Sequence record: NC_005260.1
Strand: one strand, 5' to 3'
DNA length: 64,000 nt
Shown here piece by piece: positions 6,013 to 64,000 of this stretch (position 1 is its first letter; each line of letters starts with the position of its first letter). Below the pieces are notes generated by a model. The model worked only from the letters and a program-made list of their open reading frames with translations, was not told the origin of the DNA and did no database searches. A program made the translations under genes and the position numbers.

Positions 6013-6186
6013 TTATGCTTCCTCGTTGTATTCAGTGCCAGCGTCGGTAACAGTTCGTTCTGCCAACGCTTTGCCATCTTTGTTGTAGATTACGGTAGTC
6101 ATTTCGCCAAAGCCATACGAGGTACGCTCAAAAGCACCTTCGACAGTAGCTAGGATTTCGTTATAACGTACTTCGTTGATTTTCAT
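6013..6186 (-). CDS. small hypothetical protein (57 aa, not in ORF track)
   Basis: MKINEVRYNEILATVEGAFERTSYGFGEMTTVIYNKDGKALAERTVTDAGTEYNEEA; AGAGG SD; fills the gap after dexA. Confidence 0.65.
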   Translation of the reverse strand: MKINEVRYNEILATVEGAFERTSYGFGEMTTVIYNKDGKALAERTVTDAGTEYNEEA

Positions 6187-21300: not shown

Positions 21301-22328
21301 TATGCTCCCTTACCGGAGTTTGCAACTGCATATAGATCCTGAACATACGCACCAACTGACTTTTTATCGTCATCGTCCAGTGCCAGCCCAGTAACGTAGT
21401 CTTTCATTTGCTCAATGACTTTTTTCGTATCGGTGATATCCTCAACATCGGAAGAGAAATTATACACCTGCTTCTGACGGAACTCATAGCACACATTTTC
21501 GAATTGTGCCATAACTGCATCGAGCTTGTCATCGAACTCATAGATTATCAATTCTACGATCTTGCCCTTGCACTTGTCAATGACTTTGGGATCAAAATCT
21601 TTCTTGTAGTCGATTCGCAGATGCCAGATATCTGGGTTAGCGATGAATTCCAGCTCTTTTGTATCAGTATCGAACACCCAAAAGCCACGAATCTCGTTGC
21701 AATCGCCCATAGTCAGGGTATACGGTGTGCCGGTATACAACACATTGCCTTTACGGCTAGATGTGTGATAGTGGCCACTGATAACTTGCTTGTAGTTGCT
21801 CAGGAAGTCAATCGCCTCACCGGTAGACGGGATGCCCTTGTAGAACTCAAATCCGTCAAGTTCCCAGTGTCCAACGCAGTATTCGGAATCAGTAGATTCG
21901 GCGTATTTCTCGATTGCTTCTTTGTTTTCCGCGCACTTCCACGGATACAGATCCCATAGAGTATCACCAAACGCAACGGTAGTCGGCTTGTCTATGATAT
22001 GAATTCCAGGTACATCATGGAACATTTCGGTAATCGAGTTCGGCATGATCTTGTCTTTGACATGCATATCGTGGTTGCCAATCAACTTGTAGCGATCAAC
22101 GAATGCATCCTCATACATTGGATTCAAGCACTCGCGCTGAAATTTCATCGTCTCTTGAGACAACCCAGCACGGACGTCAAACCAGTCACCAGTCTGAATG
22201 TATGCAGTTATACCATGCTTCTTAGCGTAGTCGCACAAAAACTTGGAACCCAGATAGATAGCGTTTTGCATGTACTCGCTATCTTTTTGCGTCCCAACAT
22301 GCTTATCGCCTTCAATGATAAGTTTCAT
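21300..22328 (-). CDS. 47: recombination endonuclease subunit gp47 (Mre11/SbcD-like)
   Basis: GDKHVG, TGDWFD, IGNHD, GHWE, SGHYH phosphoesterase motifs; start MKLII with AAGGA SD. Confidence 0.95.
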   Translation of the reverse strand: MKLIIEGDKHVGTQKDSEYMQNAIYLGSKFLCDYAKKHGITAYIQTGDWFDVRAGLSQETMKFQRECLNPMYEDAFVDRYKLIGNHDMHVKDKIMPNSITEMFHDVPGIHIIDKPTTVAFGDTLWDLYPWKCAENKEAIEKYAESTDSEYCVGHWELDGFEFYKGIPSTGEAIDFLSNYKQVISGHYHTSSRKGNVLYTGTPYTLTMGDCNEIRGFWVFDTDTKELEFIANPDIWHLRIDYKKDFDPKVIDKCKGKIVELIIYEFDDKLDAVMAQFENVCYEFRQKQVYNFSSDVEDITDTKKVIEQMKDYVTGLALDDDDKKSVGAYVQDLYAVANSGKGA

Positions 22329-60625: not shown

Positions 60626-60876
60626 TGCCAGTTGTCCTTCTCACCTATGATATCGCAGATGTATTCTGAATCGCTGGCGATTACTTCGCCGTCAAGCTGA
60701 ATTTCTACTTCGAGTTTACCATCGGTAGCACTCATTGAGACTTCCAGCTTTTCTTTCAGATACGCTTTAAGTTGTTCCAGTATATCTGGACTCAAACTGT
60801 TGTCAACTGATTTTTCCACAATTTTTGTGCTCTTTACATTGCGTTGTTGTGTAGCCGTCAAACACAGAACGAGCAC
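60622..60876 (-). CDS. small acidic hypothetical protein (start uncertain)
   Basis: YLKEKLEVS...LEVEIQLDGEVIASDSEY. Confidence 0.6.
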   Translation of the reverse strand: MLVLCLTATQQRNVKSTKIVEKSVDNSLSPDILEQLKAYLKEKLEVSMSATDGKLEVEIQLDGEVIASDSEYICDIIGEKDNWQ

Positions 60877-61294
60877 GATAATAGTCCTTAGCTGTGAATC
60901 CGTTCACACTATCAACGTGGATAAAATGTTCTTTTTGTGACTCCAACATATCGTCGTCATCATCAACAATCACATAATTTTCACATTCTTGGTGTTTGTT
61001 CAGCCACTCTTGAATCAACTCGCCGCGATTCTCACCAACAAGATCTCTTGTCTTGAAATCCTCGTGCAGACAATCAGGTGGGAATCCTGCCATCGCAAGT
61101 TGATCCTTCACCATCTGCGCATCGCAGCCAAGTCTCCAAGTGCTACTGTATACCACTTTCAAATTGTAGTCAACGATAAGTTTGGATAAAAGCTTTACAG
61201 CTCCTATGTCTACCATTTGCCCGTATTTCAAGTAACTGCTATCGCTATGAAATACGCCGTCAACATCGAGAAACATTACACGGCATTTTTTCAT
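60803..61294 (-). CDS. HAD-superfamily phosphatase (Swiss-army-knife RNA-repair-like HAD)
   Basis: FLDVDGV, VYSSTWR, RGELIQEWL, YVIVDD motifs. Confidence 0.85.
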   Translation of the reverse strand: MKKCRVMFLDVDGVFHSDSSYLKYGQMVDIGAVKLLSKLIVDYNLKVVYSSTWRLGCDAQMVKDQLAMAGFPPDCLHEDFKTRDLVGENRGELIQEWLNKHQECENYVIVDDDDDMLESQKEHFIHVDSVNGFTAKDYYRARSVFDGYTTTQCKEHKNCGKIS

Positions 61295-62538
61295 ATGTCA
61301 AGCGTCCACATCGTATCTTTCAGCCAATCTGGATACTTTCTACCGTCGCTGGTATCAGTCTCGTCTAGTGTGTTGCAATAAGCGATTTGACTTTCAATCC
61401 GAGTTCGGTATTCTTCTCCCAAAAGCTTCACCAATCGCTCTATGGCAGCGTTTCTATTGTCCAGCATATACTCACAAGCGTATATACGAGAAACGATTGT
61501 ACCAGCGTTCTGGCCTGCTTCCAGCATACGTTTCACGATGCCTTCTAGTATGTTACCGTCACCACACGACGGCTCAAAGAAAGTCGAACTAGAATTTGCG
61601 TCATCGATATCGGTATAATCCAACATCTGATTTACGAGTTCAATAGGAGTAAAGAACTCCGCAGTTTTCTTTTGGCGATCTCGCTCAATCTTGTCGGTAA
61701 ACAATCGGGTGTCACCAACGACTTGCGTTTTGTGTCGCTTGCCGCCATAGTAATCTTCGATCACTTCCTGCACTCTTGGTCTGATATCAAGCATATCGAA
61801 TTTTTCGAATAACTCGTCATCAGTCCAACGCTTCGTCATGTCTACCCATGGGATTGCATGTAGCTCGCCACTGTCTAGGTGAACATTCATCTTATACAGA
61901 GAAAGCATAAATCTTGCAAAGTCCGTTTTCAGATAAGCAATAAAATTCTCTGCTTCTTCTAACGTTCTAAACGCAAAATTTTGACCGCGCTTTGGCATTT
62001 CAGTCGTCGGAACGTAATCAACTGGGAACATCGTAAAGAAGTCGCTATTAAAGCGTTTGCCAGCTTCTGGAGGATGTCCTCTAACACTTGCTATAGTGAC
62101 GTAGTGACTTGCTCCTATAACTTCGCCAGAGCATTTCATGTGCGCTACGCTCGGATATTTCATCTTGTCATAGACATCAACACACCAATCTCCAATCATA
62201 TTGATTTTGTTTAGCGGCAGTCTTGCGTCATAATAACCAGAAACGTTAATTAGACCGGATTTCATTGTTTTGTCAATAACGGTTATACTAAGCGGAGTAA
62301 GAAATCCAGCTTTGAAAACGGCGTTACCGTCAAACAAATGAACACTCGTTGTATATTCTTTCATATTGCCGAGTAGTTCAGCAACTCGCTTAGTTTGTCT
62401 AGTTGGCTTTCTGTTTACAAATGGTCCGGACGGATGCACCGCGACGGTGACATCACATTTCTTTACACCTAGATTAACAAAGTCAACGTGCAAACCCGCA
62501 CTATATGGCGGGTTTGCGATCATGTAATCAAAGTGCAT
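61291..62538 (-). CDS. N6-adenine DNA methyltransferase, Eco57I/TaqI-like motifs in permuted order
   Basis: NPPY at residues 9-12; FFTP, FEPSCGDG and IYACE near the C-terminus. Confidence 0.8.
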   Translation of the reverse strand: MHFDYMIANPPYSAGLHVDFVNLGVKKCDVTVAVHPSGPFVNRKPTRQTKRVAELLGNMKEYTTSVHLFDGNAVFKAGFLTPLSITVIDKTMKSGLINVSGYYDARLPLNKINMIGDWCVDVYDKMKYPSVAHMKCSGEVIGASHYVTIASVRGHPPEAGKRFNSDFFTMFPVDYVPTTEMPKRGQNFAFRTLEEAENFIAYLKTDFARFMLSLYKMNVHLDSGELHAIPWVDMTKRWTDDELFEKFDMLDIRPRVQEVIEDYYGGKRHKTQVVGDTRLFTDKIERDRQKKTAEFFTPIELVNQMLDYTDIDDANSSSTFFEPSCGDGNILEGIVKRMLEAGQNAGTIVSRIYACEYMLDNRNAAIERLVKLLGEEYRTRIESQIAYCNTLDETDTSDGRKYPDWLKDTMWTLDI

Positions 62539-63223: not shown

Positions 63224-63252
63224 AATTTCTCCTATGAGAGGGCCCGAAGCCC

Positions 63253-63453
63253 TCAAATGTCAAACAGTGATGCAAGCCCAGGATGTTGTGGGAACTTCAC
63301 CTGTTTTGTGTTTTTGTCAATAGCCAATCCGGTTTGTTTAACAAACGCATCGAATTTTTCTTTAGAAGCAAAACGGACTTTGATCGTCCGTTTACCACTT
63401 TTCATTTTTTCGACAACGTGTTCCGGTGCGGCATCTGGGTTAACGTATGCCAT
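63253..63453 (-). CDS. small hypothetical protein coupled to the glycosyltransferase-like gene
   Basis: IKVRFASKEKFDAFVKQTG...TKQVKFP. Confidence 0.7.
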   Translation of the reverse strand: MAYVNPDAAPEHVVEKMKSGKRTIKVRFASKEKFDAFVKQTGLAIDKNTKQVKFPQHPGLASLFDI

Positions 63454-64000
63454 TATTCTTCCTCGTCGTTAGCATCTTGTTCGGACGCTTTGATGGATGT
63501 TAGCACCATTCCGTATTCATTGCAACCTTCTGGAATAACATTTTTCAGTTTCAGACGATTTGCGCGATACGGTGCGTAGTCTACCCAGTGATGCCAGCGA
63601 CCATTCATCCACTGCAATCTGGCAACGTCTGGATGCATGTCCACGATCATTTGCGACTTAGGCAGAGTACCTTCTTTCGAATAGAAAGCTTCGGTGTTAC
63701 CACCTGCCATTGCTTGAGTCACCAGCTTTCCAGTCAGATAAGCATTATATTGAATCGTGCAATGGCCGTCTTTCAGAACACGCAGACTCAAATCGGTATC
63801 TTCGTTATAGCGACCTCTCCAGCGATACGGGATATCGTTCAGAATGAGTAGGGTACTATAAATCCGACAGTTTTGAACGAATGGCGGCAAAGTCTCTTTT
63901 GGCACAGCAAAGAAGCGATAATGTGGACCAGCGATATACACGTTATCATAACGATCAACATGATCTTCCATTGCACGGAAGATAGCACCGCTATTAACGA
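63453..64000 (-). CDS. GREB1-like / TET-associated glycosyltransferase (TAGT) family protein, 5'-truncated by the window edge
   Basis: WRGRYNEDTDLSLRVLKDG...GGNT...KSQMIVDMHPD...GRWHHWVDY; frame stays open to the window end. Confidence 0.65.
   Translation of the reverse strand, partial: VNSGAIFRAMEDHVDRYDNVYIAGPHYRFFAVPKETLPPFVQNCRIYSTLLILNDIPYRWRGRYNEDTDLSLRVLKDGHCTIQYNAYLTGKLVTQAMAGGNTEAFYSKEGTLPKSQMIVDMHPDVARLQWMNGRWHHWVDYAPYRANRLKLKNVIPEGCNEYGMVLTSIKASEQDANDEEE

Follow-up and report, generated by a model that had tools for sequence, protein, structure and literature searches.

A TAGT-family glycosyltransferase of Aeromonas phage Aeh1 travels with a small paralogous partner that carries a candidate sliding-clamp-binding tail

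Introduction

What could a predicted DNA glycosyltransferase act on in a phage with no recognisable route to a hydroxylated pyrimidine, and does its gene belong to a longer modification pathway? The question is raised by the end of a 64,000-base stretch (hereafter, the window), which corresponds with 100% identity to bases 1-64000 of the 233,234-bp genome of Aeromonas phage Aeh1 (NC_005260), a T4-related virus of the genus Cinqassovirus, family Straboviridae. A minus-strand open reading frame (ORF) leaves the window at its end. The whole gene, Aeh1p093 (63453-64652, 399 aa), contributes its last 181 codons (residues 219-399) to the window; its catalytic DxD motif (WVMDDN, 64041-64058) and its N-terminal domain lie outside. 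In a first-pass annotation, this ORF and the 66-codon ORF coupled to it, Aeh1p092, were taken for the edge of a "non-T4" hypermodification locus, a label that does not suit a T4-related phage, and the other pathway genes were expected just beyond 64 kb. The Aeh1 enzyme has an entry, citing Iyer 2013, in a published catalogue as presumably modifying an unknown base in DNA (PMC8056088), and "solitary" TAGT homologues, the function of which is yet to be defined, occur in 288 of 753 glycosyltransferase-encoding phage genomes (PMC13216743).

Here, we describe Aeh1p093 and Aeh1p092 as a two-gene cassette and not the edge of a multi-gene pathway, because no other Aeh1 neighbour recurs in 93 TAGT loci and the pathway genes are absent. 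The explanation towards which we lean, with little more than even confidence, is that of an autonomous mobile cassette in which an active TAGT enzyme and a clamp adaptor glycosylate newly replicated phage DNA.

Results

Family, fold and conservation of Aeh1p093

Full-length Aeh1p093 matches the Pfam TAGT family PF20691 with 151.6 bits (E 3.6e-44; residues 105-317, profile positions 1-204 of 205) at a gathering cut-off of 27.5 bits, and the piece truncated by the window reaches 70.3 bits; the match to phrog_842 scores 232 bits. An AlphaFold2 (AF2) model built with 60 homologues (predicted local distance difference test score, pLDDT, 88.4; predicted template modelling score 0.87) has a GT-A fold. 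With this model, Foldseek retrieved from the PDB nothing but GT-A enzymes, at modest scores, and a sequence search of the PDB gave no match. The best matches in BFVD were viral proteins with a TAGT domain (E 1e-26 to 1e-11); among them is an enzyme of the T6 type, encoded by Klebsiella phage PKO111 (E 4e-11). The family assignment that had been made from the truncated ORF is thus borne out, and the 4 sequence motifs on which it was based are all present (Table 1).

Residues R183, D202-D203 (in WVMDDN) and E284-D285 are invariant in the 60-homologue alignment. They correspond to the R...DDD...EDY/F motifs of phage GT-A DNA glycosyltransferases and of JGT (10.1101/2023.12.21.572611). Invariant columns continue through the C-terminal region (G317, G318, F323, Y324, E327-T329, K332, S333, P341, R352, H354 and H355), where a subfamily-specific subdomain extends past the end of the Pfam model. 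Compared with phiAS5, the gene has a ratio of nonsynonymous to synonymous substitution rates (dN/dS) of 0.052 at a dS of ~1.1 and is the best conserved of its neighbourhood. Aeh1p093 is therefore a TAGT-family member with intact catalytic motifs that is under strong purifying selection. The family is very large, with more than 7,600 word-search matches and at least 592 IMG/VR loci. PADLOC reported nothing for the enzyme, Aeh1p092, p089, p091 or p095, and for p094 just a marginal JetA match (E 0.007).

The partner and the two-gene cassette

In all 11 full-length loci inspected (Aeh1, POP12 and L025, L027, L029, L032, L033, L034, L119, L120 and L121, the L-numbers denoting metagenomic T4-like contigs), an ORF of 53-84 aa lies directly 3' of the enzyme gene, often overlapping it; that of L121 is uncalled as a gene and was taken from the frame-2 translation. 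In Aeh1, the coupling of the 66-aa ORF, already remarked upon in the first-pass annotation, takes the form of a TAATG stop/start overlap, and 11 other loci have a junction that is likewise tight or overlapping. A GAGGAAG Shine-Dalgarno-like run precedes the ATG of Aeh1p092, and a GC-rich hairpin starting at its stop codon (-18.1 kcal/mol in a 71-nt context, z -1.97) marks the end of the two-gene unit.

The genes around the cassette are wholly different in each locus (tk/Band_7; gp46-47/deformylase; DsbA/gp41/UvsX; UvsY/UvsW; and others), and homologues mostly sit in replication or nucleotide-metabolism modules. When 15 genes of the Aeh1 neighbourhood (p086-p100) were compared by tblastn with 93 TAGT loci totalling 950 kb, only the enzyme (93 loci) and the partner matched; the methyltransferase-like gene, the HAD-like p089, p091, p094 and p095 each matched in none of the 93. 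Among cultured phages, the partner is found nowhere except directly downstream of a TAGT gene. The cassette is mobile, and we read the methyltransferase, the HAD-like gene and the other neighbours as modules unrelated to it. The methyltransferase had been counted as a member of the locus for its distance of about 0.7 kb; this distance is accurate (715 bases to the small ORF, on the same strand), but the proximity is lineage-specific.

A word-based search with the 66-aa partner returned only itself and its phiAS5 counterpart (dN 0.078, dS saturated), and a full hidden Markov model (HMM) search was needed. Run exhaustively over 1.8 billion representatives, it yielded 81 partner-family clusters, nearly all of 53-80 aa. 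Neither the partner nor the enzyme N-domain has a match in Pfam at E 10, and the ESM Atlas returned unnamed viral clusters alone for the small domain.

A profile of 8 partners aligned with residues 45-84 of the enzyme in hhalign (probability 96.7%, E 3.4e-10). Both regions are strand-helix-strand and share the pattern ...[IV]x[IV]RF....D...F....GI......K.I.[YF]P, and by this profile comparison Aeh1p092 and the N-terminal beta-alpha-beta domain of the enzyme itself are paralogues. The partner HMM also detects the domain fused to the C terminus of the enzyme in 6 homologues (P0043, P0046 and P0047, with E 1e-15, and P0063, P0068 and P0072) and to the N terminus in 7 others (P0073, P0074, P0090, P0101, P0105, P0106 and P0108); in the enzymes of phages Kuja and PTm1, the same N-terminal extension can be recognised by eye in the alignment. 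No separate small ORF accompanies the fused P0047 at its locus, L031. The AF2 model of P0047 (pLDDT 86.6) shows the fused domain as strand-helix-strand with pLDDT above 90, behind a disordered linker; the tail of the protein, its last 5 residues (463-467), is disordered. This model contains strands 48-54 and 77-80 of the N-domain, which that of the unfused Aeh1 enzyme lacks. From these models, we infer that the partner and the enzyme N-domain may pair as 2 half-domains. The small beta-alpha-beta domain was also found behind ParB_N in P0191 (PF02195, 26.9 bits) and in tandem in P0177 and P0192, which suggests an adaptor module in general use by the DNA-modification systems of phages.

Another arrangement was seen in about half of 80 IMG/VR relatives, in which the N-domain is a separate upstream ORF of 80-100 aa that ends in ...RYVDES and overlaps, in another frame, the start of a 290-aa catalytic-core ORF (L035, L037, L039 and about 40 more; e.g., L035:5956-6198, with the core ORF starting at 6182). 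Either the enzyme is encoded by a split gene in these relatives, or the overlap is possibly a site of frameshifting.

A candidate clamp-binding tail

The hydrophobic-acidic C termini of gp43, gp55 and gp33 are ligands of the gp45 sliding clamp, are interchangeable and function even when internal (PMC2988020). In Aeh1, these proteins end in ASLSDLFGDM (gp43), GGLSFLE followed by an acidic run (gp55) and ATLAFLE (gp33), and T6 gp43 ends in ASLDFLFG; the Aeh1 partner ends in GLASLFDI. On contig L029, the polymerase and the partner terminate in ISLDSFFG and KLEDFFN, respectively, and among the C-terminally fused enzymes we find SLSEFFG, TLDTFFC and SLADFL. Tails such as SLEAFFG, SLSDFFG, LDEFFQ and SLDDFM predominate among 61 small family members, 45 of which match a loose tail motif (background 0.10-0.12) and 23 a tighter one (background 0.006-0.015). 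In a set of 15 hand-gathered tails, comprising 9 stand-alone partners and 6 fusions, the loose motif occurs 11 times (binomial P 7e-8) and the tighter one 10 times (P 1e-15). By its likeness to these ligands, the Aeh1p092 tail is predicted to bind the gp45 clamp.

Many enzymes of the family also have a tail of their own. In P0009-P0019 and on contigs L119 (2501-3724) and L120 (2501-3733), the enzyme ends in LGKLDFVG or a similar sequence followed by an acidic run, as in gp55, and is still accompanied by the partner. This hints at a two-armed clamp attachment that may be compared with gp33 and gp55; the idea that the enzyme's own tail and the partner are alternatives was rejected, since L119 and L120 carry both. 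Elsewhere in the Aeh1 genome, the DprA-like protein Aeh1p239 (genome 162127-162684) ends in IDLSFLE, like gp55 and gp33, and may be another gp45 client.

Search for an acceptor pathway

The Aeh1 genome contains one real thymidylate synthase (TS)-family gene, td (203482-204315, adjoining frd), which scores 291 bits against the equivalog TIGR03284 (cut-off 108), compared with 29 bits for the control, T6 gp42; a second weak match (22089-22277) was spurious, being antisense inside gene 47. Genome-wide searches revealed no gene 42-type enzyme and no gene 56, alpha-gt or beta-gt. This agrees with Petrov et al., in whose list Aeh1 is one of the phages lacking genes 42 and 56 as well as the glucosyltransferases (PMC2993671), and extends to the whole genome what had been noted for the window. 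Tet_JBP (PF12851), 2OG-FeII_Oxy_2 and _3 (PF13640 and PF13532 searched) and C5 DNA methylases gave no candidate in the genome even at E 1. The known precursor genes are absent from Aeh1.

Just beyond 64 kb, where TET/JBP, hydroxymethylase, aGPT-PPlase or ParB-like genes had been anticipated, there are none of these; Aeh1p094 and Aeh1p095 are followed by a long series of small unknown genes with no relevant domain. Aeh1p094 and Aeh1p095 (genome 64715-66372) are adjacent, fast-evolving paralogues that share an N-terminal F.NVTV.GKT motif, and Aeh1p094 is 27% identical to its phiAS5 counterpart with a dN/dS of 0.54.

The other phages that carry the subfamily give a similar picture. The TS-family content of POP12 is an intron-split td alone, henriette 12B8 and GD1 have a true td as their sole TS-family gene, and phage 1.076.O has no TS-family gene. 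PF12851 is absent from these 4 and from phage 65 (5 complete genomes), with the caveat that PF12851 is present on just 83% of contigs from the Clade C2/phage-5mYOX profiles, thousands being without the annotation (PMC13229309). The only TS homolog of Kuja and that of phage 65 score near or below the thymidylate-synthase equivalog cut-offs.

Two of the phages deserve separate mention. Kuja (a Vibrio phage of the Ackermannviridae) carries a tandem of 2 TAGT genes in both of which the N-domain is doubled (L010:6788-9476; L016:1498-2385), and its sole TS homolog falls just under the cut-offs; judging from these genes, Kuja may make glycosylated hydroxymethyluracil. The Tenacibaculum phage PTm1, also a TAGT carrier, encodes, in addition to an insert-containing td, a second, divergent TS-family protein of 225 aa (L023:1444-2121; TIGR03283, 51.7 bits) that is a candidate pyrimidine hydroxy(methyl)ase.

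Other features of the locus

The features of the window are collected in Table 1. The methyltransferase-like gene is considered permuted because its NPPY motif is near the N terminus and its AdoMet (S-adenosylmethionine) motif, EPSCGDG, near residue 320. It adjoins Aeh1p089 (window 60803-61294), one of 2 small HAD-like proteins with a DxDGV motif; the gene for the other, Aeh1p322 (genome 203015-203518), overlaps the end of td. A sigma-70-like promoter 5' of the enzyme gene (genome 64683-64711) was discarded, its score being no better than chance. A search for sequencing runs with the locus returned only metagenome contigs, at a 0.07 share of sampled words.

Table 1. Features at and near the end of the Aeh1 window (window positions)
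Feature	Position	Strand	Basis
Aeh1p093, TAGT-family glycosyltransferase, C-terminal part	63453..64000	minus	PF20691, phrog_842, AF2 model, dN/dS
RGRYNEDTDLSLRVLKDG block with invariant E284-D285 (GT-A "ED" active-site motif)	63765-63818	minus	60-homologue alignment
GGNT motif	63693-63704	minus	read from sequence
KSQMIVDMHPD motif	63627-63659	minus	read from sequence
RWHHWVDY motif	63576-63599	minus	read from sequence
Subfamily-specific C-terminal subdomain (GGNT ... EGT.PKS ... HPD ... RWHH.VDY)	63576..63704	minus	past Pfam model end
TAATG stop/start overlap, glycosyltransferase to partner	63451..63455	minus	read from sequence
66-aa partner Aeh1p092	63253..63453	minus	phrog_22103
Beta-alpha-beta core of Aeh1p092 (RTIKVRF...KFP)	63289..63390	minus	paralogous to glycosyltransferase residues 45-84, hhalign
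Aeh1p092 C-terminal tail GLASLFDI, candidate gp45 sliding-clamp-binding motif	63256..63279	minus	tail comparison
7-bp GC-rich hairpin GAGGGCU-UCG-GGCCCUC, from partner stop codon onward	63238..63254	minus	RNA folding
Permuted methyltransferase-like gene	61291-62538	minus	NPPY near N terminus, AdoMet motif EPSCGDG near residue 320

Discussion

In the explanation that we favour, Aeh1p093 would be an active GT-A nucleotide-sugar transferase of the TAGT family, which bears at its N terminus a beta-alpha-beta domain specific to its subfamily and at its C terminus a lid. By pairing with the N-domain, Aeh1p092 most likely completes a small alpha/beta module, and its free hydrophobic-acidic tail would bind the gp45 sliding clamp, such that the enzyme-partner pair rides the clamp and places sugar onto newly replicated DNA. 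The acceptor in Aeh1 would be something other than hydroxymethylcytosine or glucosyl-hydroxymethylcytosine, because we recognise in Aeh1 no route by which a hydroxylated pyrimidine could be made. The pairing of partner and enzyme, the binding to the clamp and DNA as the acceptor are the steps that we infer, and the published reading that Aeh1p093 modifies DNA is plausible, as yet unproven. We consider it rather unlikely that a clamp-tethered enzyme adds sugar to replicating DNA without a hydroxylated pyrimidine, using as acceptor a canonical base (by N- or O-glycosylation) or an undescribed alternative.

Among known systems, the T2/T6 beta-glucosyl-HMC-alpha-glucosyltransferase (HMC, hydroxymethylcytosine) shares with Aeh1p093 the PF20691 family, the GT-A fold and an origin in T4-family phages, and the DxD motifs align (WVMDDN in Aeh1p093, WMIDDT in the T6 enzyme). 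However, the 2 proteins are not significantly similar in BLASTP (E 0.13), the T6 enzyme scores 37.2 bits against PF20691 compared with 151.6 for Aeh1p093, and with 279 aa it has no N-terminal beta-alpha-beta domain, C-terminal lid or partner, all 3 of which are found in the Aeh1 system. Furthermore, T6 makes its acceptor with gene 42 and alpha-glucosyltransferase, whereas Aeh1 has neither. The TET/5mYOX-associated phage GT-A enzymes and trypanosome JGT, which transfer sugar post-replicatively to a hydroxymethyl base in DNA (Pyle et al., 10.1101/2023.12.21.572611), resemble Aeh1p093 in the GT-A fold and the R...DD...ED motifs. Unlike these, which adjoin genes for a methyltransferase and TET or for a TS-type hydroxymethylase, the Aeh1 enzyme has no such genes in its cassette or genome. 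T4 alpha-glucosyltransferase, also a DNA glycosyltransferase of a T4-family phage, binds and co-purifies with gp45 (PMC13216743, which cites and confirms Sommer 2004). Its fold is GT-B and its sequence is unrelated to that of Aeh1p093; it binds the clamp by itself, whereas in Aeh1 the tail would come from a separate paralogue acting as adaptor. With gp43, gp55 and gp33, the partner shares a short hydrophobic-acidic tail at the extreme C terminus after a flexible linker (LASLFD in the partner, LSDLFG in gp43), but outside this tail the partner consists of a new small domain without a Pfam family, and its gp45 binding is predicted.

Several points weigh against the clamp-tethered modification of DNA. 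Canonical DNA provides no hydroxyl for glycosylation, and Aeh1, POP12, henriette 12B8, GD1 and 1.076.O all lack a TS-type hydroxylase and PF12851. The tail motifs were composed post hoc, once the sequences were known, and in Aeh1 the tight one also matches the baseplate protein gp26 and the DprA-like protein. The half-domain pairing is drawn solely from changes in secondary structure between models. About half of the 80 IMG/VR relatives have a single beta-alpha-beta domain and no clamp-tailed partner; clamp tethering would therefore characterise the T4-like branch rather than the subfamily at large. Finally, the gene in Vibrio phage 1.076.O is located between portal and head-morphogenesis genes, and a member of the TAGT family, GREB1, has a protein substrate: this large cytoplasmic protein of animals, which belongs to the same Pfam family, a kinship already noted in the first-pass annotation, and lacks the phage-type N-domain and a partner, O-GlcNAcylates estrogen receptor-alpha (PMC7968844).

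The last 2 points also speak for an acceptor other than DNA, namely a replisome, clamp-bound, virion or host protein, with the small partner as a targeting or regulatory subunit. The lack of a hydroxylated-base pathway in the 6 phages that carry the subfamily is in keeping with such an acceptor, as is the finding that about 65% of phage glycosyltransferase contigs have no neighbouring base-modification gene (10.1101/2023.12.21.572611). Against it, the characterised phage members, i.e., the T6 enzyme and the TET-associated GT-A enzymes, all act on DNA, the genomic contexts are mostly replication or nucleotide-metabolism modules, and DNA is also indicated by the clamp-type tail and by the fusion of the small domain to ParB_N. 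We give a protein acceptor a real but small chance.

It is less probable still that the product is a base-J-like glycosyl-hydroxymethyl pyrimidine, its hydroxymethyl group being supplied from elsewhere in the genome by a divergent oxygenase or other enzyme that the profiles missed. The incomplete coverage of Clade C2/phage-5mYOX contigs by PF12851 leaves room for such an enzyme, Clade C2 T-dioxygenases often accompany glycosyltransferases and adenine methyltransferases (PMC13229309), and the borderline TS homologs of Kuja and phage 65 and the second one of PTm1 fit the same picture. Yet Aeh1 has no PF12851, PF13640 or PF13532 candidate even at E 1, the other 5 complete genomes lack PF12851, no conserved third gene accompanies the cassette in the 93 loci, and Aeh1p094 and Aeh1p095 evolve too fast for enzymes. 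The multi-gene hypermodification locus of the first-pass annotation, joining the permuted methyltransferase to TET/JBP, hydroxymethylase, aGPT-PPlase and ParB genes beyond 64 kb, was suggested by the nearby methyltransferase on the same strand; it is very improbable, given that the genes past 64 kb and the genome-wide searches yielded no such domains, that the neighbours do not recur with TAGT genes and that the methyltransferase is of the NPPY (amino-methylating) type, which creates no hydroxyl acceptor. That the RefSeq name is correct and Aeh1p093 adds a second glucose to glucosyl-hydroxymethylcytosine, as in T2/T6, has the annotation and the phrog_842 match in its favour and scarcely merits credit, given the insignificant BLASTP match to the T6 enzyme and the absence of gene 42, gene 56, alpha-gt and beta-gt.

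On the sequence evidence, the RefSeq name of Aeh1p093, which derives from phrog_842, is thus not justified. It is misleading whether the acceptor is DNA or protein and should not be propagated. The same name is attached to distant TAGT proteins in NC_005260, NC_055733, NC_014636, NC_015251, NC_048827 and NC_049340, the genomes of phages without hydroxymethylcytosine genes, and represents a spreading over-annotation.

In the literature searched, we found neither the partner/N-domain paralogy nor the fusions described, and no mention of a mobile cassette or of a clamp-type tail on the partner. The class of solitary TAGT proteins hereby gains a concrete anatomy, consisting of an extra N-domain, a partner paralogous to it, which some lineages have joined to the enzyme, and a tail of the clamp type, and Aeh1 is a cultured phage free of hydroxymethylcytosine that is suited to testing the function of this class. 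If protein is its substrate, the enzyme would be an example of phage-encoded glycosylation of replisome-associated proteins. If the substrate is DNA, there must be in Aeh1 either an undescribed base or a known one made by an undescribed route, with a bearing on the evasion of restriction and CRISPR, on sequencing artefacts and possibly on enzymatic tools for DNA labelling. Should a clamp-tethered enzyme indeed add sugar to canonical bases or to an undescribed acceptor, DNA would be modified in a way that is new in kind and occurs widely among T4-like and marine phages.

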